Source of the DNA: Rebecca billardiae RCC1528
Lineage: Eukaryota > Protista > Haptophyta
Reading direction: 5' to 3'
Length of the DNA: 64,000 bases
NCBI GenBank assembly: GCA_965240325.2
Contig: OZ251242.1
Coordinates: 1,426,001 to 1,490,000 of the forward strand
Shown here: positions 1-22,307 of the stretch, one piece after another
How positions within the stretch are numbered: the stretch's first letter is position 1
Layout of the letters: the number at the start of each line of letters is the position of its first letter
Translations under genes and position numbers: made by a program
Notes under the pieces: generated by a model
Databases searched by the model: none
Seen by the model: the letters and a program-made list of their open reading frames with translations, nothing else
What the model was told of the DNA's origin: nothing

Positions 1-2690
1 AGCAGCGCGCGGCTGTGCCTGTGCCGCGCGCGGGCGCGGCGCGGAGAGGGCGGAGGCGCGGCGTGCCGGTGCGTGAGCGCGCGTGCCGCGCGCAGGCCGC
101 GGGCGCGCGCACGTCGCGTGCTCGCGCGCGCGCGCACCGGCGGCTTCGGCTTCGGCTTCGGGGCGGGAGCGGCTCGCGTCGAGCGCGAGGGGTGCGCGCG
201 CTTGGCTCGCTTCTTGGCGTCGCGCCGGCTGACGAGGCCTCGGCCTCCGTCGTCCGAGCTGCTGCCCGAGTCGTCCGCCTCGGCGGCGGCCGCGGCCGGC
301 TTGGGCGGCGCGCGGCGCGGCGAGCGCTCGCGCTTGCCGCCCGGCGTGCCACCGGCGTCGGCGGCGGCATCCGCGCCGTCCACGCCGTCCACGCCGTCCG
401 AGGCGAGAGGCGAGGGGTACGGCCGGCGGCGGCCGCTCGCAGAGCCGCCGGCCGTCGACGCGCGGCGCGCGGTGCCGCCCGTCCGAGCCGCCGAGCCGCG
501 CGGCGTGTGCGCGCCGCCGGCCGCGCGCGCAGAGGCGGGCGTGGGCGTGCCAGCGGGCCCGCCGCCGCCGCCGCCGCTGGCTGGGGGTGGGCCGCGGAGC
601 GCGCCCGCGGCGTGCTTGGTCGCGCCGCTCGGCGAGAGCAGGTGTGCTCCGCCGGCCGAGCGCGCGCCGCCCGCGCCGCGCGCCACGTTGGACACGAGGC
701 CGAACGCCGGCGGCAGCACGGAGCGCGTGAGCTGCGGCGGAGGGTCGTCGGCGGTGGGCGCGCGGAACAGCAGCGCAGGCACGTGCTGCTGCGTCGCGCC
801 GCCGTCCGCGCCGTCCGCGCCGCCGCCGCCCGCGCCCCACACGGTGTGTTGCGCCTTGGCCGTGAGCACCGCGTGCGCCACGTCGGCCGCGACGTGGATG
901 GGCGCGGGCGCGCCCGGCGCGGGCGGCACGCCGTGGCGGTCGACCGCGCCCTGCGCGGCGGCGCGGCGCGGCGCGCGCGGAGGGCGCGCGGGCGGCGCGT
1001 GAGCGGCCGCGGCGTTCGGGCGGGGCGGCGGCGGCTGGCGGCGCCGGCGGTCGCGAGGCGCCGCGCGCGCGCGTGCGGCCCACCTTGATGCCTGTGAGCA
1101 TGCGCAGCATCAGCGTCACGTCGCCGCACGAGCCGCCGCCGCCGGCGAGGCCGTCGTCGGCGGGCGCGGGCGCGAGCGCGCTGCCCGCCGCGTCCGCGCC
1201 GCCCGCCGCGCCCTGCGCCGCGCCGCCGCCGCCGAGCGCGGCATAGAAGGCGGCGAAGGTGAGCTGCGCGCCGTCGAATGAGCGCGCGGCCGCGTCCTCG
1301 TCCATCAGCGTCTCGTCGCGCGCCACCAGCCACACCAGCCACTGCGCAGAGGCGAGGCGCGCGGCGGCGGTGGTGCGCGGTGGTGCGGTGTGCGCTCAGC
1401 GGTGCGGCGCGCGACCCGCGCGGCGCGCGCGCGCGCGCGTCGCGTGCGCGTGCGCGTGCGCGCACCGGCAGCGCGGTCTCGGGCAGGTAGAGCGCCGCCA
1501 CGCGCGCCGAGACCGGCGCGGGCGCGGGCGGCGCCGGGCCGCCCGCGAGCACGAGCGCGCGCGACGCCGCGCCCTCGGAGTCCTGACGCGCGCGCGCCGC
1601 GACCGCCGCGCGCGCGAGCGTGGCGCGCGCGCGCCGAGCGTATGCGTGCAACAGCTCCTTGGCCGCGCGCTTGAGGGCGCGCGGCTGCGCGGCGGTGCCG
1701 AGGGCGAGGGCGGCGCAGAAGTACGCGGGCAGGTGCCGGCTGCGCGCGAGCACGCGGCCGAGCGGCCCCGCCGCCGCGCCCGGGTACGGCGCGCGCGTGA
1801 GCCGCTTGTAGCTCTGCGCGAGCGCCGCGCCCGCGACCGCCGCGTCGTCGTCTGCGCACAGCCACGCCGCGCGGTGCAGCCCGTGAGCGGGCAGGTGGCG
1901 CGCGCGCACAGAGTCGAGCGTGAGCGCGCGCAGCAGCGCGGAGTGCGCCGCGCGCACGAGCGTCGTGCGCGCCGCCGAAGGCGCCGCCTCCGAGCCCACG
2001 ACCGCGAGGAGCGGGCCGAGCACTCCGGCCGCCTCCTCCGCTGCCTCCTCCGCGCCCGCGCCGCCGCGCGCCGCAGCCGCCGTCGCGGCCGTCGCGGCCG
2101 CCCCTCCCTCCAACTCGAACGCGGCGTCGAGCTGCGCCATGGGCAGGTCCGGGACGGGCTGGTCGGCGGTGGCGAGCGTGGCCGCGGCCGCGCGCACGGC
2201 GACGGCCGCGCCGTACAGCTTGAGCCACGGCGCCGCCGCGTGCGCCGCGCGCTCGGCGCCGAGCGCGGCGGCGCCGCCGCCGGCCGCGGCGTCGGCCGCG
2301 CAGAGGCTGAGCGCGCGCGCGCCCACGCGCCGCGCGCGGTCGCACAGCGCGTCGCACCACGGCGCGAAGGCGGCGGGCGCGGCGAGGCCGAGGCGGCGCA
2401 GCGCGACCAGCGCGCCCGCCTGCGCCGGCCCCGCCTGCGCGATCAGCCGCTCGGCGGGCGCGTCGTGCTGGCCCGCGCGCAGCGCCGGCCAGCGGCGGCG
2501 CGCGCTCGCCGCCGTGCCGCCGCCGCCGAGCGCGGTGCGCGCGAGCGCCTCGCAGAGCTGCGCGTGCGCGGCCGCGCCGTCGTGCGCGCACAGCATCGCC
2601 ACGACCAGCTTGGGCAGCGCGCGCGCGCGGGGGGGCAGCGGCCGCCCGCTCGCCGCCGCGAGCGCGGCGGCGGCCGCGTCGTCGGCGCGA

Positions 2691-12468: not shown

Positions 12469-13317
12469 TCAGATCTCCACTGTGGTCTGGCCGCACTTGT
12501 GGTTGTGGATGTGAGCGGCGCAGCATTGCTTGAGACAGAGCTCCGCCTCGTCCTCGTCCTCGTAGTCATCCTCCTGAGTGATCCAGGGATCCTCCTCGAA
12601 GCGCGACTCGGAGCGGTCGTCGTCCACGTCGCGGTCGCACACCTGCAAGTGGTTCCAGCAGAACAGGCGACTCACCAAGTCCTCGTCGTACGCGTCGCGG
12701 TCCTCCCAGTCCATCGCCCCAACATCAATGTCGCACTCCACACGAAGACGGCACTCGGCGCACTCCCTAAGCTGGGCCCCACGTCGGTAGTGTGCCGGGC
12801 AGAAGGCGGCGGTGCAATGGCTCTCGCTGCAGCAGTAGCGCCCGGAGAAGACCATTTCGAAATCCTGGTACCTCCCATCTGGAAGAGAGCCCTCACCATT
12901 TCCGTGCAGCCGGCACACGCGCGCTGCGCACCCCGCCGTGTTGCACGTGCGGATCTCACAGCCCTCGAGTGCGCCCGAGCAGACGACACGCACTAGGCAC
13001 GTGGGAGTTTGCAAGATGCAGCGGCGCTCCCAGAGCTTGACGGCTCGCTCGATGGTCCTCAGAGGCTCATCCGGGGTCCCGAGGCCGCGGTCGTCGTCGC
13101 CCCGGTCCAAGTCCACGACAAAGGGCGGCGTGAGGCGCAGGGCCTTTGAGCGGCGTCCCGTGAAGCGCTCGTCATCCACAAGCGCGCGCCATCGGCGACA
13201 GACTCGGCGCGCGCTGACCAGATCGCGGTCGTTGAGAATGGTGAGCGCCAGACCCAGCGCGCGATCATCGTTCGCCTCGTCGTGGTCGTCGTCTCCCGCC
13301 ATCATCATCATCAGCAT
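12469..13317 (-). CDS. F-box protein with a DUF1565-like motif and a Cys/His-rich C-terminal region
   Basis: F-box-like LALTILNDRDLVSARRVCRRWRALVDD, then FVVDLDRGDDDRGLGTPDEPLRTIERAV, then many CxxC/CxxH pairs. Intronless. Start may be 13317 or 13302. Confidence 0.7.
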   Translation of the reverse strand: MLMMMMAGDDDHDEANDDRALGLALTILNDRDLVSARRVCRRWRALVDDERFTGRRSKALRLTPPFVVDLDRGDDDRGLGTPDEPLRTIERAVKLWERRCILQTPTCLVRVVCSGALEGCEIRTCNTAGCAARVCRLHGNGEGSLPDGRYQDFEMVFSGRYCCSESHCTAAFCPAHYRRGAQLRECAECRLRVECDIDVGAMDWEDRDAYDEDLVSRLFCWNHLQVCDRDVDDDRSESRFEEDPWITQEDDYEDEDEAELCLKQCCAAHIHNHKCGQTTVEI

Positions 13318-13632
13318 GCTACGACTATGAGCGGAATTTGCGCATGGCCGGACGGACGGCCGGAAAGCTCCAAAGCCCGAGGTCTCGGTGCGGGGCAACC
13401 GAAATCCAAAAAGGCGGCGCGCTCATTTTTCGGGGGCGCGGATTTCGGGATGAAATGTATTGATGGCGGTGGCCGCCCCAGCCGCTCCGCCCCGCCGTTG
13501 GCCGCCACCATGCGTCGGGGAGGCGCTAGATGGACACCATCGCCGCCAGGCTCGCGCCGCCATGTCTAGATCTATATATATCTATCTAGCTATCGATCCA
13601 TATGCAAGTTGCAACGCGACGACCGACGACGC

Positions 13633-13665
<33 letters not shown>
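13633..13665 (+). repeat. (GAT)n microsatellite
   Basis: About 11 tandem GAT units. Confidence 0.95.
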
Positions 13666-13771: not shown

Positions 13772-15922
13772 CTACCCCCGTAGGCGGTGGTACGCCTTGT
13801 GGTGGTGCTCGTGCTCGTGGTTGGCCGAGTCGAAGACGCAGCCCCGGGGGCACACGTGGAAGTGGCCGAACAGCAGCGAGCGGTGCGAGTCGAGCCGGCG
13901 CCGCCCAAAGTGCGAGCCCCACGCGTCCTCCTCGCCCGGCCCTGCGCGCACGCACCAGCGCGGGCACTCCACGCCCGCACGCTCGGGCGCGGGCGTGGGC
14001 GTGGGCGTGGGCGCGGCCGACGCGCCGACGCCCGCCGCCCCGGCCGCACCCGCCGAGCCAGCCGCCGCCCTCGGCCCGGGCGTGGGCGTCCAGCGCACGA
14101 TCTCGTCGAGGCCTGCGTCGTAGACGATGTTGTCCAGCCCGTCTGTGTAGATCACGTCGCGCACGCCGTCCTGCGCGCGCACGGTGTCCACGCCGCGCCC
14201 GCCGCGAATCTTGTCGTAGCCCTGCCCGCCGACGATCACGTCGTTGCCGGGCCCACCTGATCCCGCCGCGGGGCCGCGCGCGTGCACGCGGCGCGCTTTG
14301 GCCGTGAGCGCGCGCGGCGCGCGGTGCGCGGCAGATTGGTCGCGCCGCGCCGCGCGCCAGCGCGCCGGTGCGCGCGCACCGTAGAGGTAGTTGGCCACCT
14401 CGCCGCCGTTGGCGCCGCTGCCGTCGTCGCCGCCGGTGATGAGGTCCGCCCCGTGCCCGCCGAGGATCACGTTCACCGCGTCGCCCGCCGCGTTGTCCGC
14501 GCCGCCGAGCTGGTGCCCCGCGTTGCCTCCGCGCAGCACGTCCGCACGGCCGCCGCCGACCAGGTGGTTGTGCACGCTGCCGCCGCTCGAGCCGTCGGCG
14601 TCGACGTCGCCGCCGTCGCCGCCGACGAGCTGGTCAAAGTCGCGGCCGCCGAAGAGCCTGTTCGTCGCGTCGCCGCCGACGAGCATCGAGCCGCCCAGCG
14701 CCTCGCCCGCGTGCCCGCCCACGAGCGCGTCCGCGTGGTCGCCGCCTCTGAGCACGTTGCTCACCGCGCCGCCGCTCGCGCGCAGCCCGCTCGCGCCGCC
14801 CGCGTCGCCGCCCTTGAGGTAGTCGCCGTTCTGCCCGCCGTAGAGCCGGTTGAGCGCGTCGCCGCCGCGCACGTCCGTGCCGCCCGCGTCGCCCGCGTTG
14901 CCGCCGAACGCGTGGTCGTACCCCTCCTCCGCGCGGAAGACGTTGCGCGCCGCGCCGCCGTCCGCGTCCTCTCCGTACGCGTCGCCGCCGTCGCCGCCGT
15001 AGAACCAGTCGTACCCGGGGCCGCCGGACGCGATCGTCTCGGCGTCGCCCGCGACGACGCTGGTGCCGTCGGCCTCGCCCGCGTCGCCCGCGTAGATCAC
15101 GTCGCGGCCGTGCCCGCCGTCCACGTACGTGTACGCGTCGCCGCCGGCGCTGCCCGCGCCGCTCGCGTCGCCGCCCGCGCCGGTGAGCACGGTGTCCGCG
15201 CCGCCGCCCGCGAGCACGCGGCTGGACGCGTCGCCGCCGACGGCGCCGCCCGAGCCGGTGGCGTCGCCGGCGTCGCCGACGTTGATCGTGTCGCCGCCGC
15301 TCCCGCCGAACACCACGTTCGCCACGCCGCCGCCCGTCCCCGGCGCGGACGCGTCGCCGGCGTTGCCGCCGCCGACGTTGTCCGAGCCGTCGGCGGCGCG
15401 CACGACGTTGCTCGCGCCGCCGCCCGCCGCGCCGCCGGTGGAGATCGAGGCGCCGTCGCCGAGCTCGGCCTGGTCGGCGCCCTTGCCGAGGTAGGCCGTG
15501 TTGTACGCCGCGCCGCCCGCCGCGCCGCCGTCGCCCAGCTTGACGGCGTCGTGCCCCCAGTTCGCGTCGACCACGTTGGTCACGGCCGCGTCGGTCGCGG
15601 GGCCGGCCGCGTCCAGCCCGCTGATCGCGTCGTTGCCGCCGAGGCCGACGAGCAGGTTGCTCGACGAGCCGGCGCCGGTGCTCTTGCCCGCCAGCGTGTC
15701 CGCCGCCGAAGTGCCCGTCTGCACGTAGTCGTACTGGTCCGGGTCGAACTGGTCGCTCAGCTTGAGCGCGCGCGCGGGCCGCGCGCCATCGGCGCGCTCG
15801 CGCGCGCCACCGCGCGGCTGCTGCGCGGGCGCGAGCGCAGCGGGCTCATCGGCCGCCTGCTGCTGCGCAGCCGCGAGCGCGGCGAGCGTGAAGAGGCACG
15901 CCGCCGCCGCCCGCGGCACCAT
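13772..15922 (-). CDS. Secreted Gly/Asp-rich RTX-like (hemolysin-type Ca-binding) repeat protein, paralog A
   Basis: Signal peptide MVPRAAAACLFTLAALAAA; ~15 repeats containing GGxGxD; one in-frame 123-nt GT-AG intron at 14257-14379 (LYG|GPGNDVIVGG); PT-rich linker; Cys/His-rich C-terminus. Confidence 0.85.
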   Translation of the reverse strand: MVPRAAAACLFTLAALAAAQQQAADEPAALAPAQQPRGGARERADGARPARALKLSDQFDPDQYDYVQTGTSAADTLAGKSTGAGSSSNLLVGLGGNDAISGLDAAGPATDAAVTNVVDANWGHDAVKLGDGGAAGGAAYNTAYLGKGADQAELGDGASISTGGAAGGGASNVVRAADGSDNVGGGNAGDASAPGTGGGVANVVFGGSGGDTINVGDAGDATGSGGAVGGDASSRVLAGGGADTVLTGAGGDASGAGSAGGDAYTYVDGGHGRDVIYAGDAGEADGTSVVAGDAETIASGGPGYDWFYGGDGGDAYGEDADGGAARNVFRAEEGYDHAFGGNAGDAGGTDVRGGDALNRLYGGQNGDYLKGGDAGGASGLRASGGAVSNVLRGGDHADALVGGHAGEALGGSMLVGGDATNRLFGGRDFDQLVGGDGGDVDADGSSGGSVHNHLVGGGRADVLRGGNAGHQLGGADNAAGDAVNVILGGHGADLITGGDDGSGANGGEVANYLYGARAPARWRAARRDQSAAHRAPRALTAKARRVHARGPAAGSGGPGNDVIVGGQGYDKIRGGRGVDTVRAQDGVRDVIYTDGLDNIVYDAGLDEIVRWTPTPGPRAAAGSAGAAGAAGVGASAAPTPTPTPAPERAGVECPRWCVRAGPGEEDAWGSHFGRRRLDSHRSLLFGHFHVCPRGCVFDSANHEHEHHHKAYHRLRG

Positions 15923-16642
15923 CTCGACTCGCCGCGGCGCGCGGAGTCGCAGCGGGGCGGCGCCTGCGCTGCTCGCCGCTGCTCGGGCCACGCCCTCCCT
16001 GCGGCTGGGCGTCCCTCGCTGCTCGCTCAAGAAGAGCTCGCCGCCGCCGGACCGCACCGGCGCCGGGCTTGAACTGCTTCGTCACGGCGCATGGCGGGCA
16101 ATGGCGCTCATCATTGCGACACGTTCACTCGGCTTGAACCGCCGGACATTAGTAGTCAACTTACCCGCGCGAATAGCTCTGCTCAGTCCTTCAGATGATA
16201 GGGAATTAGGGATGCAGGGCCGGGCCGGCGCGTTGCCAGGCCGCGAGGGCAGTACACGCTCGAACGCGCGAGGTCAAGGCGGCTGCTCCCTGGCGAGATC
16301 GGCAGATCGCGCGGGGTGGACGCGCTACGCCCCCTCACATAGCCGAAATTTGGGCGGTGGGCGCACCCGGCTCTTTTACTAGGAGTTTCAGACTCCCGGC
16401 GGAGCTCAGGACTGCAGATGCAGTGGCGATGCACTTTGGGTCCGTGGCCTCTCAAGTTTTGAATAGGCGTGGAATGGGTCGTAACCCACCTGATGCGCGT
16501 CTCCAATAAGTAGGTGCGCCCGCCGCGCCGGCGCGACCAAAACTGTGCGCGCCGCTCAAGGTTTGCGCGGGCGGCGCAGAGGCGCAAAGCTCGGGGGGGC
16601 TCGTCCGGCGCGTTGGGGGCACCGCCAGACAAGGGGGCCACG

Positions 16643-19062
16643 ATGCTGCGAGTGGCGTGCCTCACGCTCGCAGCACTCGCGGCGGTGCAGGCCGCGGAGC
16701 CGGCCGCCGAGTCCGCGCGGCAGGATGCCAAGCACCACGATCACACGCACCACCGCCACAGGTACGGCGTCGACGCCCTGCGCGCGCGCGCGAGCACGAG
16801 CGAGCGGGCCGGCCGCGCGGGAGGGGGCGGGTCGAGCGCGCGCGGCGGCTGCGCACGAGCTGTCGGGCGCGCCGCGCCCGCGAGCGCTCACGCGCGGAGG
16901 GCACCCATTCGTGCCGCGCCCACCGCGCGGCCCCGCAGCTCGCACAAGTCGGCGGGCGCCTCGCGGCCCGCGCGCGCGCTCAAGCTGAACGACCAGTTCG
17001 ACTCGGACAACTACGACTACTACACGACCGGCAAACTTGGGCCGGACACGCTGCAGGCCTCTAGCACCGGGGGCTCGGAGTCGAGCAACTTGATCGTTGG
17101 CCGCGCCGGTGCTGACGACATCACCGGTCTGAACGCGGATGGCTGGAACGGGTGGGATCAATACGTGACAAACGTGATCGACGCCAACGCGGGCGACGAC
17201 CAGGTCAAGCTGGGCGATGCCGGCAAGAGCGGCGGCTCCGCGTACAACAAGGCGTACCTCGGGCAAGGCGCGGACCAGGTCGAGCTTGGCGACGGCTCGG
17301 GCCCCGGCAAGTACGGCGACGGCGGCTCCGCGCTCAACCTCGTCGTCGGCGGCAAGGGCGGCGACGTGTTCACCGGCGGCAACGCCGCCAACGGCGCCTT
17401 CAGCGGCGGGAAGGCGGGCGTCGTGGCCAACTACATCAACGGCGGCGGCGGCCGGGACGTGGTCAACGTTGGCGACGCCGGCGACGCGAACATGATCGCC
17501 TCGGTCGGTGGCAGCACGCTCAACGTGATCACGACCGGGAACGGCGACGACACCATCCTGGGCGGCGACGCGGGCGAGGTGACGGGCGGCCAGTACTCCA
17601 CCGCCGGCAGCACCGTCACGTTCGTCGACGGCGGCCGCGGCCGCGACGTGATCTACGCCGGCGGCGCCGGCGACACCCTCGGCGTGGGCACGAAGGGCGG
17701 CGACGCGACGACGTACGCCACGGGCGGCCTCGGGTACGACTGGTTCTACGGCGGCGACGGCGGCGACGCGTACGGCCTCCAGACCGAGGGCGGCACCGTC
17801 AAGAACGTCTTCCGCGCGGAGGAGGGGTACGACCACGCGTTCGGCGGCAACGCGGGCGACGCGTACGGCCAGGACGTGAGAGCGGGCGACGCGATCAACA
17901 AGCTGTACGGCGGGAAGAACCAGGACTACCTGAAGGGCGGCGACGCCGGCGACGTGGCGGGCAAGCAGGCCTTCAACTCGGTGGGCGGGTACGTGAACAA
18001 CGTGCTCGTGGGCGGCGACCACTCGGACGTGCTCAAGGGCGGCAACGGCGGCGACGCCACCGGCTTCACCGTCGACGACCCCATCAACGCCAACTACGGC
18101 GGCGTCGCGCGCAACGTGATGAAGGGCGGCAGAGACTTCGACAAGATCGTCGGCGGCGACGCGGGCTACGCCGACGCGCAGTACAACTACGGCGGCGACG
18201 TCCTCAACTACATCGACGGCGGCGCGGCCGCGGACATCCTCACCGGCGGCGACGCGGGCGGCGGCTCCTTTGGCGGGTATGGCGGCGACGCGCTCAACGT
18301 GATCCACGGCGACGGCGGCAACGACATCATCACCGGCGGTGACGACGGCACCGGCTCGACCGGCGGCGACGTGACCAACGCCCTCTACGGTGCGCGCACC
18401 GCGCGCACCCACCGCACCGCGCGCTCCGCGCCCTCGCGGCGCCGTGCTGACCAGCGAGCGCGCGCACGATGCCCCCGCTGGCCGCGCGCCCTCGCGAGCA
18501 GGCGGCCCGGGCGACGACGTGATCACCGGCGGCAAGGGCTACGACTTTATCAACGGTAGGGCCGCGGCGCGCGCGCCGGATGCGGCCCCGCGCGCGCGCG
18601 CTCACCCGCACCCCTCGCGCGCGCGCGCGCGCGCTGCCCCGGCGCGCAGGCGGGCGCGGCCACGACACGATCTTTGCGCAGGACGGCGTGCGCGACGTGA
18701 TCTACACGGACGGGCTGGACAACATCTTCTACGACGCCGGCCTCGACGAGATCCGGCAGTGGACGCCCACGCCGTCGCCCGTCCCGCTGCCGTCGCCGAC
18801 ACCGATGCCGACGCCCGCGCCCACACCTGACCCGGTCGACTGCCCCAAGTACTGCGTGCCCGAGCGGCGCCAGCTCGAGGAGGCGAGCGCGGACGAGCAG
18901 CAGTGGGGCGCGCCGGGCCGGCGCGAGCGCGGAGAGCGCGGCTACTCGCACCGCTCGCTGCTGTTCGGCCACTTCCACATGTGCCCCCAGGGCTGCGTCT
19001 TCGACACCGCCAACCACGCGCACGAGCACCCCAAGAAGACCTACCACCGCCGCCGCGGCTAA
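16643..19062 (+). CDS. Secreted Gly/Asp-rich RTX-like repeat protein, paralog B
   Basis: Signal peptide MLRVACLTLAALAAVQA; introns 16762-16938, 18390-18501, 18556-18649; collinear with paralog A and shares the LYG|G intron position; ends HRSLLFGHFHMCPQGCVFDTANHAHEHPKKTYHRRRG. Confidence 0.88.
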
Positions 19063-19975: not shown

Positions 19976-20637
19976 TCAGCCCTCGCCGAGTAGCAGCTGC
20001 TTGTACGCCGAGAGCGCCGCCGCGAGCAGCGCGCCATCGGCGGGAGCGCCCGGGCGGCTGACGGCGTTGCCTGGTTGGCGACGGCGCGCCGTGGGCATCG
20101 CCGCCCTGCGGGCCGTTGCCGCGCCGCCCTCCCGCGCGCTCTCGCCATTCATCGCGCCCGCGGCGGCGACGCCAGCGTCGGCGGGCGGCTCCGGGCGTGG
20201 CGCGAACGCAGCTCGGAGCGAGCCGCGCTCAGGGTGCGCGCGCGGCGGCCGGGGCCGTGCCGCGGCCGCGCGCCGCCAGCCGAAGGCGACGCGCGCCTCC
20301 CGCGCCTCGGGGAGCGGCTGGCGTGCCTCCGCCTCCGCCTCCGCCTTATCCGCCTCCGCCTCCGCCTCGGCCTCCGCCTCGCTGCCGCTATCGGCATACC
20401 CCAGCGGGCCGCGCAGCCGCGCGCCGCCCGCGCCGCCGACAGAGATGCGCAGGGCGCCCCCCTCCGCGCCCTCCCCCGCGCCGTCCTCGCCCTCGCCCTC
20501 GGGCTGCCTTCCCCCCGGCTGCGTGCCGCCCTCTGCGCCGGCCTCGTCGCCGTCCTCGCCCGCGCCCTCGGCGCCACCCCAGCCGCCAAACACGCCGTCA
20601 GCGCACCCCTCACCCTCACCCTCGCCCTCGCCCTCCG

Positions 20638-20672
<35 letters not shown>

Positions 20673-21486
20673 CCCGTGTCGGGCGCGCCGTCCGCGTCCG
20701 TGTCGAGGCCCTCGTCGCCCCGCTCGGCGTCTGCCTCCTCCGCCTCCTCCCCCTCCTCCTCCGCGCCCTCCTCCTCGTCTCCGCTCAGCGGGCCGCCCTG
20801 CGGGCCGCGCTCCGCGCCCGCGCCGCCGCCGCCGTCGTCGCCGAGCGCGCCGCCCGCGCCGCCCGCGGCTGAAAGTCCGGTGAGAGAGAGAGTGAGCACG
20901 CCACTCAGCCCGCGCTTGGTGTACGGCGCCTCCGCGCCCTCCGCCTCATCCTCCGCCAGCACGGCGCCGCCCACCGCCTCGTCCAGCCCGGCCATCCCGC
21001 CCGTCTCCTCGTCCGCGCCGCCGAGCGCGCTGGCCGCGCCCAGGGCGCTGCCGCGCACGCTGCTGCCGCGCACGCTGCCCTCGCCCGCCACGCTCCCGGC
21101 CGCGGAGGGCAGGCCGAGGCTGGGCGCGCGCGCGGCGCGCGGGCTGGGCATGCCGAGCGCGCCGCTGGGCATCAGCGCGCCGCCCTCGTCCAGCGTCGAC
21201 TCCGTCGGCACCGGCAGCCGCCGCTTGGCGCCAGCGCCGCCGGGCGCGCCGCCGCCGCCGGGGCCGCCGGGGAGCTGCAGCCGCGGCCCGCCCGCGCCCG
21301 AGCTGCCGCCCGCGGCGGCGTCGGCGTCGGCGTCGTCGTCGGCGTCGAGCTGGACCGAGATGGGCGGCTGGGCTACGCCCGGCCAGAGCGGCGCGCCCGC
21401 GTCGTCCACGTCCATCGCCGCCTCGCCCCCGCGCTCCGCGGCCGCCGCCGCCTCCGCCTCCGCCTCCGCCGCCGCCTCCGCCGCCG

Positions 21487-21565
<79 letters not shown>

Positions 21566-22307
21566 GCGCCGCTGCCGCTTGCGCTCCGCCTTCTCCTCGC
21601 GCCGGCGGCGCGCGGCCTCCTCCGCCTCGGCGTCGGCCGCGCCGCCGGCCGCGCCGCCCTCCGCGCCGGCGGGCCAGCCGCCCGCCAGGCTCGTCCGCGC
21701 GCGCGCCAGCACGTCTTCCCTGGGCGGCCGCACGCACTGGAAGGCGTACACGCGCCCGTGCTGCCCGCCCTCCACGAACCGCACCTCGAGCTCGGAGTAG
21801 TCGGCGGAGACGGCGACGACCTCGGCGGGGTAGAAGGTGGAGGTGACCTCGCCCGTCTCCTCGTCCGGCCACAGCGCGAGCACCTCCTCGCCTGCGCCGC
21901 CGGGGCGCGCACGCGCCGCGCGGGCCGCGCGCGCGGTGAGCGCACCGCGCCGCGCGGCGCGTCGTGCGCGCGCGGAGGCGCCTACCGGGCTCGTACGGGG
22001 CGGCGAGGAGGTCGGGGTAGCGCGCGATGCCAAAGAGCGACACGAGGTGCACCTCGCCCAGCCCGACCGCCGGCACGCCCGCGCCCTCGGGCGACTCGTC
22101 GATCACGGCGTACGCGTCCCGGCCGCGCTCAAAGCCGACCGCGCGCGAGACGATCCAGTGCCACGAGCGCTCGCCCGAGCCGTCGTCGGCGGTGAGCAGG
22201 ACGTGCGCGGCGGCCGTGCGGCCGATCAGCTGCAGCGGGTCGTGCCACGCGCACGCCTCGAGCGGCTCGAGCCGCAGCGAGACGGCCGAGGCCGACGACG
22301 CCATCAT
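19976..22307 (-). CDS. SGF29-like tandem Tudor domain protein with poly-Gln and a long acidic C-terminus
   Basis: WHWIVSRAVGFERGRDAYAVIDE...PYEPG|EEVLALWPDEETGEVTSTFYPAEVV resembles the SGF29 (DUF1325) double Tudor motif GxxVLALYPxTTxFYxAxV; GT-AG intron at 21892-21985. Confidence 0.7.
21488..21562 (-). repeat. (CAG)25 coding repeat (poly-Gln)
   Basis: 25 perfect CTG units on the + strand, in frame in the Tudor gene. Confidence 0.95.

Follow-up and report, generated by a model that had tools for sequence, protein, structure and literature searches.

A head-to-head pair of predicted RTX-like beta-solenoid genes in the haptophyte Rebecca billardiae and the genomic family around it

Introduction

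Do two neighbouring algal genes that face each other across a short spacer and resemble bacterial RTX proteins form a special calcium-binding system, or are they members of something larger? RTX beta-rolls are considered a bacterial device that goes with type I secretion, and proteins with this repeat (PF00353, HemolysinCabind) in Gram-negative bacteria include the RTX blocks of CyaA, the C-domains of serralysins, and RsaA. A preliminary description of the window, the 64,000-nucleotide stretch of Rebecca billardiae RCC1528 DNA whose coordinates are used throughout, proposed that genes A and B encode secreted, RTX-like proteins and act as a co-regulated pair. We have analyzed the gene models, the repeat architecture, the predicted structure, and the distribution of related genes in the genome.

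Results

Gene models

Genes A and B are located head to head, with the start codons facing each other across exactly 720 bp (15923–16642):

13772..15922, minus strand: gene A by ORF and translation, ATG at 15922 and stop at 13772–13774; exon 1 at 14380–15922, exon 2 at 13772–14256, in-frame GT..AG intron at 14257–14379
15923..16642: divergent spacer, 720 bp, GC content 0.68
16643..19062, plus strand: gene B by ORF and translation, ATG at 16643 and stop at 19060–19062; exons at 16643–16761, 16939–18389, 18502–18555 and 18650–19062; introns at 18390–18501 and 18556–18649, both required to restore the frame, and a further, putative intron, in frame, at 16762–16938

With these introns removed, the products would be 675 aa (A) and 678 aa (B) long. 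The two frame-restoring introns of gene B are in phase 1, within a Gly codon, and their positions recur in paralogs L005 and L021. The GC content at codon positions 1, 2 and 3 is 0.78, 0.59 and 0.98 in A, and 0.66, 0.49 and 0.96 in B. GC3 of 0.96–0.98 and the conservation of the GT–AG intron positions mark A and B as real eukaryotic genes. The proteins share 52% identity over 553 aa (E 1e-124), a strongly conserved central block reaching 71–81% and the C-terminal parts 51%. Coordinates and identity bear out the divergent pair of paralogs with a 720-bp spacer seen in the preliminary description, and the GT–AG introns present in both genes agree with its view of them as intronised.

Domain architecture

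The features of the two products are as follows:

15866..15922, minus strand: A, signal-like N-terminus MVPRAAAACLFTLAALAAA, with A-x-A preceding QQQ
15665..15865, minus strand: A, variable acidic/basic stretch defined by the A/B alignment, ending RPAR-ALKLSDQFDPDQYDY
14399..15667, minus strand: A, 14 long coils of 25–32 aa, mode 31
14090..14257, minus strand: A, nonamers GGPGNDVIV, GGQGYDKIR and GGRGVDTVR, and cap QDGVRDVIYTDGLDNIVYDAGLDEIVRW
13967..14089, minus strand: A, Pro/Thr/Ala/Gly linker, from the translation, pLDDT <50
13775..13966, minus strand: A, 4-Cys, His-rich, basic tail (CPRWCV ... SHRSLLFGHFHVCPRGCVFD ... HRLRG)
17081..18370, plus strand: B, 14 long coils of 25–38 aa, pairing one-to-one with those of A
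18501..18762, plus strand: B, cap and three classical nonamers, the latter split by the intron at 18556–18649
18841..19059, plus strand: B, 4-Cys, His-rich, basic tail

Residues 1–19 of A (Kyte–Doolittle value 1.69) are its sole hydrophobic segment, with homologous N-termini in B and in paralogs L003, L014 and L021; B likewise has one hydrophobic segment, at the N-terminus, and none elsewhere. Both proteins look secreted, as suggested previously, each having one hydrophobic N-terminal segment and no second one. In B the string HHDHTHHRH follows the signal peptide. The conserved part of the stretch at 15665..15865 in A is modelled as short helices (model residues 2–9 and 12–14) at the N-terminal end of the solenoid, and RPAR could correspond to the R-x-x-R motif of dibasic proteases.

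The long coils follow the consensus A-x-N-x-(L/V/I)-x-G-G-x-G-x-D-x-(L/I/V)-x-G-G-(D/N)-A-G-D-A-x-G-x(3-11)-G-G-D, with a layout of roughly 9+9+4+9 residues. Scaffold positions N3, G7, G8, G10, D12, G17, D/N18 and G20 are conserved in A and B, while x and loop positions vary between them; strict GGxGxD is seen in only 6–7 coils per protein. Asp12 is retained in 27 of the 28 coils and position 18 is D or N in 24 of 28, a conservation compatible with Ca2+ binding as far as the residues themselves can indicate. The solenoid is very acidic, with pI about 4.1 and net charge –43 in A and –34 in B.

PF00353 detects only the last three nonamers, with 27.3 bits on residues 556–586 of A, where the cut-off is 23 (33.2 bits in the six-frame search), and with 20.3 bits on the equivalent exon of B alone; the main exon of B has zero Pfam matches at E ≤ 1. 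In ESM feature space, the closest clusters are RTX families (0.90–0.92). The RTX-like character proposed earlier is supported by both the above-threshold match on the terminal nonamers and these clusters. Of the approximately 15 expanded repeats of about 31 aa described initially, the long coil stands, and the count is corrected to 14 long coils followed by three classical nonamers; that the array is not a run of classical 9-mers is confirmed by the 14 coils with mode 31, to which the Pfam RTX model is blind. The cap, PT linker and Cys/His tail are all present as described.

Caps similar to those of A and B are found in bacterial Ca-binding proteins, Actinomycetota among them, as had been supposed; they come from Thermoleophilia, Chloroflexota, a Cyanobium, and Planctomycete-like proteins, the phylum being recorded for a minority of matches. 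In the cap tree, P0019, P0027 and P0045 cluster with an algal family member (support 97/91), and on its 43 columns, which bear on the possible acquisition from bacteria raised in the preliminary description, a single algal clade is not rejected (AU p 0.44), with Planctomycete-like proteins nearest.

In the tail, S-L-L-F-G-x-F, C-P-x-G-C and F-D are invariant in 10 of 10 sequences, and the upstream C-P-x-x-C is present in at least 90% of these ten. In the model, the two segments that hold the Cys pair up as strands (pLDDT about 76–78). The tail parts of B and of paralog L036 have zero Pfam matches, and the PDB sequence search gave no match to the tail of A.

Predicted structure and comparison with known proteins

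The AlphaFold (AF2) model, built with a 51-row alignment, is a confident beta-solenoid (mean pLDDT 75, most coils >90), with one poor coil, the very one that A and B conserve best. The solenoid expected from the sequence is thus recovered, as a predicted rather than solved structure, with a coil longer than the RTX turn. Among solved structures the best match is 3p4g (Z 21.7, rmsd 3.2 Å, 278 of 312 residues aligned, 20% identity), region IV of the Marinomonas primoryensis ice-binding adhesin MpAFP, a Ca2+-dependent beta-helix. All subsequent matches have Z of 17 or lower, including CyaA RTX (Z 13–17) and RsaA (Z 16–17). As beta-solenoids of unrelated families also reach Z 12–17, the fold alone is no proof of RTX ancestry or Ca2+ binding. 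A Foldseek search yielded zero matches at E ≤ 0.001. An enzyme or tailspike with the pectate-lyase-like right-handed parallel beta-helix was considered and rejected, with only generic Z of 12–16 at 5–10% identity and no Pfam or NCBIfam match.

Like the RTX proteins of Gram-negative bacteria, A and B are Gly/Asp-rich, have GGxGxDxUx units and three canonical nonamers followed by a C-terminal cap, and their modelled parallel beta-solenoid matches those of CyaA and RsaA. However, the classical roll has an 18-residue turn, whereas the main body of A and B consists of coils of about 31 residues; the bacterial proteins have an uncleaved C-terminal type I signal, and A and B, instead, a eukaryotic N-terminal signal-like segment. 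They differ further by spliceosomal introns and by the Pro/Thr linker and 4-Cys module at the C-terminus. The introns, N-terminal hydrophobic segment and Cys/His C-terminus do not fit type I secretion.

MpAFP has a 19-residue coil, xGTGNDxuxuGGxuxGxux, with a flat Thr/Asx ice-binding face. Its region IV is an RTX-like solenoid with one Ca-type turn per coil, as in the model of A and B, but only about 19 of 31 residues superpose, the remainder in A and B forming an extra variable arc.

Short secreted RTX-like Ca-binding proteins of Thermoleophilia/Solirubrobacterales, Chloroflexota, Cyanobium and Planctomycete-like origin (P0019, P0045, P0042) share the terminal unit with A and B, that is, two to three nonamers and then D-x-(I/V)-x-A-x-D-G-x-x-D-x-I-x-x-D-G-x-D-x-(I/V)-x-x-D-x-x-L-D, with 41–55% identity between bacterial and algal proteins over 44–56 aa. 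Unlike A and B, these proteins consist of 9-mers throughout and lack the 31-residue coils, PT linker and Cys tail.

The family in the genome

The repeat has at least 80 matching places across the 72-Mb genome, and the cap, about 30. Other RTX-like proteins of the genome share with A and B the coil of 27–31 aa, the intron after N-Y-L-Y-G, and the three nonamers with the cap; some versions are joined to LRR and FG-GAP-like parts, and at one paralog locus a hydrophobic, transmembrane-like stretch is encoded after the cap. A and B differ from these other proteins in having no second hydrophobic segment and appear to be soluble. They are part of a subfamily of six genes whose hallmarks are the 4-Cys/His basic tail and a common signal sequence of the MLRV...AAVQA type, the other four genes residing on C12 (at 0.90 Mb and 1.93 Mb), C11 and C33. 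An environmental relative is 78–79% identical to two of the tail-bearing genes; given this and the six genes, the tail is under constraint. Beyond the organism's own reads and that one environmental relative, no close relative was found among 1.84 billion representative proteins, and a literature search found no paper on the family.

Discussion

We consider it probable that A and B are diverged paralogs which arose by an old local inverted duplication within a large, lineage-expanded algal family of extracellular proteins, each a solenoid rod made rigid by Ca2+ and carrying a Cys tail in the cell coat. The N-terminal signal sequence would direct each protein to the ER, and the Gly/Asp-rich region would fold into a straight, very acidic beta-solenoid of 14 coils of about 31 residues, each coil combining an RTX-type turn GGxGxD, a near-RTX turn GGDAGD and a variable arc of about 12 residues, with three classical RTX nonamers and a bacterial-type cap at the end. 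Judging from RTX beta-rolls and the Marinomonas antifreeze protein, Ca2+ ions most likely line up in rows at the turns, which would yield a rigid rod in Ca-rich seawater. The Pro/Thr linker is probably extended and glycosylated and bears the small 4-Cys, His-rich, basic module, whose most likely function is to fasten the rod to a partner or to the acidic cell covering, or else to bind metal. A structural, adhesive or recognition role in the cell coat is likely.

Other explanations have been weighed against this one. That the genes are dead, or their reading frames artefacts of GC-rich low-complexity DNA, seems very improbable. The genome is about 75% GC, and long ORFs also occur antisense to both genes (14282–16072 on the plus strand, 16556–18535 on the minus strand), although these are themselves by-products of base composition; the NG86 dN/dS of A versus B is 0.95, a ratio whose dS is unreliable under the extreme GC3 bias. 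Against it, GC3 of 0.96–0.98 compared with GC2 of 0.49–0.59 is frame-specific, the frame of B is restored by GT–AG introns at positions shared with paralogs, variation falls on the x positions and spares the scaffold residues, and the tail is conserved in another species. We give as little credence to ice or crystal binding in the manner of the Marinomonas antifreeze protein: 3p4g is indeed the best structural match and the fold is similar, but the coil has 31 residues rather than 19, the Thr/Asx ladder is absent, and the outward turn positions are mixed (G, K, D, R or A at position 9; A, G, Y, R or S at position 11) and differ freely between A and B. Extracellular handling of Cu, Zn or Ca, with the His-rich 4-Cys tail and the N-terminal His stretch binding transition metals and the acidic solenoid as carrier, is somewhat less improbable, yet still rather unlikely. 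The tail of A has 10 His and 4 Cys in 72 aa, the His string of B comes after its signal peptide, a DUF305 protein with Met/His/Asp-rich repeats (L041) ends in the same Cys module, and paralogs L036 and L037 carry Met/Pro/His-rich linkers. However, the tail His positions are not conserved in the subfamily, where only S-L-L-F-G-x-F, the Cys and F-D are; the four Cys of a secreted protein could equally form two disulfides, and no known metal-binding family was matched.

The reading closest to the preliminary description, a dedicated two-component system with a shared bidirectional promoter, co-expression and a heteromer, also appears unlikely. It is favored by the divergent orientation across 720 bp, the one-to-one order of coils in proteins of nearly equal length, and the strongly conserved central block. 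Still, none of the other four tail-bearing genes has an oppositely oriented family match at its locus, elsewhere in the genome the family forms same-strand tandem arrays, and the spacer contains no shared elements and no internal inverted or duplicated promoter-like symmetry, except for the flanking homologous signal-peptide codons. Together with the at least 80 repeat places, these observations speak against a dedicated co-regulated pair: A and B belong to a large family of this genome, and a special two-gene system is not supported.

The value of the observation accordingly lies in the family and its soluble tail-bearing subfamily, the claim of a two-gene system adding little. RTX chemistry is seen here in a eukaryotic alga, with the coil lengthened to 31 residues, a predicted ER signal placed in front, and dozens of genomic places. 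A bolder proposal, offered tentatively, is that the 31-residue coil represents a distinct, eukaryote-evolved class of Ca2+-stabilised beta-solenoid, and that, with C-P-x-x-C ... S-L-L-F-G-x-F-x-C-P-x-G-C-x-F-D as an anchoring or metal module, it defines a new haptophyte (Pavlovales-type) cell-coat family; its members could account for unknown proteins of the cell covering or of the knob scales, and the variable arcs could act as surfaces for recognition. The conserved Cys module stands apart as a domain that has no name yet. Protein engineers would also gain a new type of scaffold if the coils bind Ca2+. To our knowledge, the surface proteins of this marine alga are essentially unknown, and Ca2+ binding by the coils would mean that its cell coat contains abundant Ca-dependent rods.

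Gene structure of the divergent pair

The window has a GC content of approximately 75% and is located on contig 25 of the assembly (72 Mb, 41 contigs). Two genes, A and B, are transcribed divergently here, their ATG codons being separated by exactly 720 bp of DNA with GC content 0.68, that is, lower than in the surroundings.

13772–15922, minus strand: gene A (ATG at 15922, stop at 13772–13774); genomic frame unbroken
14257–14379, minus strand: in-frame GT..AG intron of A, 123 nt, at the first of the two phase-1 positions of B
16643–19062, plus strand: gene B (start at 16643, end at 19060–19062); reading passes through three frames
16762–16938, plus strand: further in-frame GT..AG interval of B, putative intron
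18390–18501 and 18556–18649, plus strand: GT..AG introns of B, each in phase 1 within a Gly codon

The two phase-1 introns resolve the frame shifts of B; A has no intron at the second of these positions. The interval 16762–16938 is probably also an intron, and with it removed B comprises 678 aa, compared to 675 aa of A. At codon positions 1/2/3, GC content is 0.78/0.59/0.98 for A and 0.66/0.49/0.96 for B. This strongly marks these particular frames as coding, and, given this pattern, the long antisense ORFs are composition artefacts. The A-versus-B dN/dS ratio of 0.95 was discarded as uninformative, given a GC3 close to 1 and a compressed dS. A scan of the spacer for sigma-70 promoters and terminators, whose models are not applicable to a eukaryote, yielded none. 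Hence the frames, the GT..AG borders and the ATG spacing bear out the preliminary description of an intron-bearing divergent pair with a 720-bp spacer.

The neighborhood has several features of its own. A perfect (GAT)11 microsatellite lies at 13633–13665, approximately 110 bp downstream of the A stop. Adjoining A, a 309-aa ORF (12469–13398, minus strand) encodes an F-box-like stretch (LTILNDRDLVSARRVCRRWRALV) and then a region rich in Cys and His. Downstream of B, a 685-aa ORF (19976–22033, minus strand) is Tudor-like at its N-terminus and contains approximately 28 Gln in a row and long, acidic repeats of Ala/Glu/Gly.

Protein architecture

A and B are paralogs with 52% identity over 553 aa (E = 1e-124), and 51% in the C-terminal part. 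The sole hydrophobic segment of both is a signal-like N-terminus (Kyte-Doolittle 1.5–1.7, 19 residues) with a plausible cleavage site having Ala at –3 and –1, which suggests that both proteins are secreted. The following variable stretch ends in the conserved segment RPARALKL(S/N)DQFD.D.YDY, which in the AF2 model folds into short helices where the rod begins, and might be processed at its R-x-x-R motif (RPAR).

Each protein then contains 14 long coils of 25–38 aa, mostly 31, with one-to-one order between A and B, a final N-Y-L-Y-G strand and three canonical nonamers (classical RTX 9-mers). The expanded repeat of approximately 31 aa reported earlier is thus retained, while the count of approximately 15 is replaced by 14 long coils plus three nonamers. 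Next come the cap, QDGVRDVIYTDGLDNI(V/F)YDAGLDEI, a Pro/Thr linker, probably glycosylated, and a tail of 64–73 aa with four Cys, many His and a basic cluster at the end; translation and alignment located the previously described cap, PT linker and Cys/His tail in both proteins. The solenoid part of the mature protein is very acidic, with pI 4.1 and net charge –43 in A and –34 in B; the tail is basic, with pI 8.6–9.3.

Positions conserved over 28 coils are A/V1, N3, aliphatic 5, G7, G8, G10, D12 (kept in 27 of 28), aliphatic 14, G16, G17, D/N18, A/G19, G20, D/E21, G24 and the final three, G-G-D. Written in nines, the coil reads GGxGxDxLx, GGDAGDAxG, 3–11 variable residues and GGDAxNxLx, and so looks like three nonamer-derived units plus an insertion.

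Sequence-family searches

Exons were searched separately, and A was used as a continuous genomic frame. Pfam detects only the terminal nonamers, with 27.3 bits in A (cut-off 23) and 20.3 bits in the small exon of B; the 638-aa main frame of B has no Pfam match at E ≤ 1. NCBIfam gave chance-level matches only, and the PDB sequence search, none at E ≤ 1. In a word-index protein search with A residues 50–716, none of the 8000 low-complexity candidates passed scoring. Of 1.84 billion representatives searched exhaustively with phmmer, 63 matched at E ≤ 0.001, four of them at ≤ 1e-10 and none at ≤ 1e-30. The bacterial matches are classical 9-mer RTX proteins aligned mostly to residues 555–608, and the 31-residue coil was found in none of them.

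The top phmmer matches are short fragments without names. Three Logan matches (P0001, P0005, and P0066) were rejected as independent relatives and taken as reads of the same organism, because P0005 and P0066 match this genome at 100% identity and the P0001 contig has an exon stretch identical to the paralog L014. Three JGI metagenome proteins (P0003, P0064, and P0065), with 78–79% identity to two contig 12 paralogs, belong to a related species. A JGI contig (L011, 3300009563, 1381 bp, GC 0.51) carries an environmental ortholog of the contig 12 tail genes; as a transposase-type HTH ORF and DNA of lower GC content lie upstream, the contig may be a chimera or represent a quite different genomic setting. 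Metagenome contigs scanned with the tail alignment gave 82 pattern matches, none confirmed.

Literature searches on scale proteomes, and on haptophyte or algal repeats of the RTX or hemolysin type, found nothing relevant. The genome paper of Diacronema lutheri (73% GC, 43.5 Mb) does not mention RTX or calcium (PMC8379373).

Modelled fold and coil conservation

A was modelled from the uninterrupted genomic frame, with 41 in-frame intron codons included. AF2 from the single sequence was unusable (pLDDT 38); an alignment of 51 rows, in which A and the B exons were joined by paralogs and environmental pieces, gave a mean pLDDT of 75, with 277 residues at ≥ 90. Each modelled coil consists of a 6-residue strand, a 6-residue GGxGxD turn, a 3-residue strand, a 6-residue GGDAGD turn, a 2-residue strand and a loop. 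Of the AlphaFold and Foldseek check proposed in the preliminary description, the first gave a solenoid for A, and Foldseek of this model against PDB retrieved nothing at E ≤ 0.001.

In VIA-align comparisons, the clear first was 3p4g, the Ca2+-dependent beta-helix of the Marinomonas antifreeze protein MpAFP (Z 21.2–21.7, rmsd 3.2 Å, 275–278 residues, 18–20% identity); the curli subunit 8c50 had a higher Z of 24.7, yet with rmsd 8.4 Å. Autotransporter passenger domains, RsaA, CyaA RTX and tailspikes followed at Z 13–17. As approximately 278 of approximately 500 model residues are aligned, about 19 of 31 residues per coil follow the MpAFP coil, whereas in the AF2 model the remaining residues of each algal coil form an extra arc. 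In the ESM atlas both protein halves are nearest to RTX clusters (0.90–0.92), a weak lead.

Among the 14 A/B coil pairs, scaffold positions are kept in 11–13, and x positions and the arc, in 2–5. The coil most conserved between A and B, residues 325–355 of A (NVFRAEEGYDHAF...), has 81% amino acid identity.

14991–14899, minus strand (A), and 17801–17893, plus strand (B): most conserved coil, NVFRAEEGYDHAFGGNAGDA, from the A/B alignment

Its first turn has no Gly-Gly, and it is the sole coil with AlphaFold pLDDT < 50.

Family in the genome and the Cys/His tail

In a six-frame search of the genome, the A coils matched at least 80 places, spread over many contigs; the nonamer-plus-cap unit matched 30 places, and PF00353 was above the cut-off in 34. 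Architectures vary, and contig 1 has tandem arrays. Two loci stand out, L008 with a composite architecture and L041 encoding an unrelated protein.

G000:C13:2080011–2083721, minus strand: L008, open frame of > 6800 aa combining LRR repeats and a PPSPP spacer with 27-aa RTX-like coils, which carry a GGW motif, and with FG-GAP-like repeats
G000:C12:2226528–2229650: L041, frame at locus positions 1069–1788 (plus), DUF305 (PF03713) with 29.6 bits (cut-off 27)

At the paralog locus L013, a hydrophobic, transmembrane-like stretch is encoded downstream of the cap.

The tail defines a six-gene subfamily that shares an MLRV...AAVQA-type signal sequence and an intron after N-Y-L-Y-G. Besides A and B, its members are two almost identical contig 12 genes and single genes on contigs 11 and 33. 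All ten tail sequences compared have S-L-L-F-G-x-F, C-P-x-G-C and F-D unchanged, and the upstream C-P-x-x-C is nearly invariant. L041, which also has long Met/His/Asp/Gly-rich repeats, ends in C-P-x-G-C ... R-R-L-L-F-G-x-F-x-x-C-P-x-G-C, the same Cys module as in A and B, so this module moves between secreted proteins that are otherwise unrelated.

Among the six tail genes only A and B are arranged head-to-head; at the loci of the other four, the six-frame search with A coils found no opposite-strand family match. The earlier suggestion of a dedicated two-gene system thus has no support beyond adjacency.

Origin of the terminal unit

A scan of prokaryotic genomes with the nonamers-plus-cap pattern identified Thermoleophilaceae, Solirubrobacterales, Limnocylindria and a Cyanobium, with 41–55% identity over 35–56 aa; the first two agree with the previously noted similarity of the cap to actinobacterial Ca-binding proteins. 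Three bacterial RTX proteins from the phmmer matches (P0019, P0045, and P0042) have an almost algal cap (..IHARDGEVDTIFTDGFDRIVADDNDEI) and an N-terminal motif like ..LE.R.LLSA, of a type that we take to be typical of Planctomycetota. In the cap tree (43 columns), 27 algal caps are on one side with four non-algal rows, and the AU test does not reject one clade for all algal caps (p 0.44); the protein matches P0019, P0027 and P0045 join one algal gene with support 97/91.

Recent bacterial contamination or transfer was rejected in view of the introns, host-like GC content and placement on a multi-megabase contig. The cap sequences fit a single ancient acquisition of the terminal unit, or its common ancestry, with later expansion within the alga; they neither prove transfer nor name a donor.

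Possible function

With an antifreeze protein as the closest structural match, ice binding might be considered for A and B, but is unlikely because the coils have no regular Thr/Asx face. By analogy, the coils would bind Ca2+. The Cys/His tail may serve for tethering or metal binding, with metal handling as its task being a live, minor alternative. The reading with most support is that A and B are diverged paralogs of secreted, acidic, probably Ca2+-stiffened solenoid rods, each with a conserved knot for tethering or metal binding at the C-terminus, and that these rods are part of a large family of cell-surface proteins.
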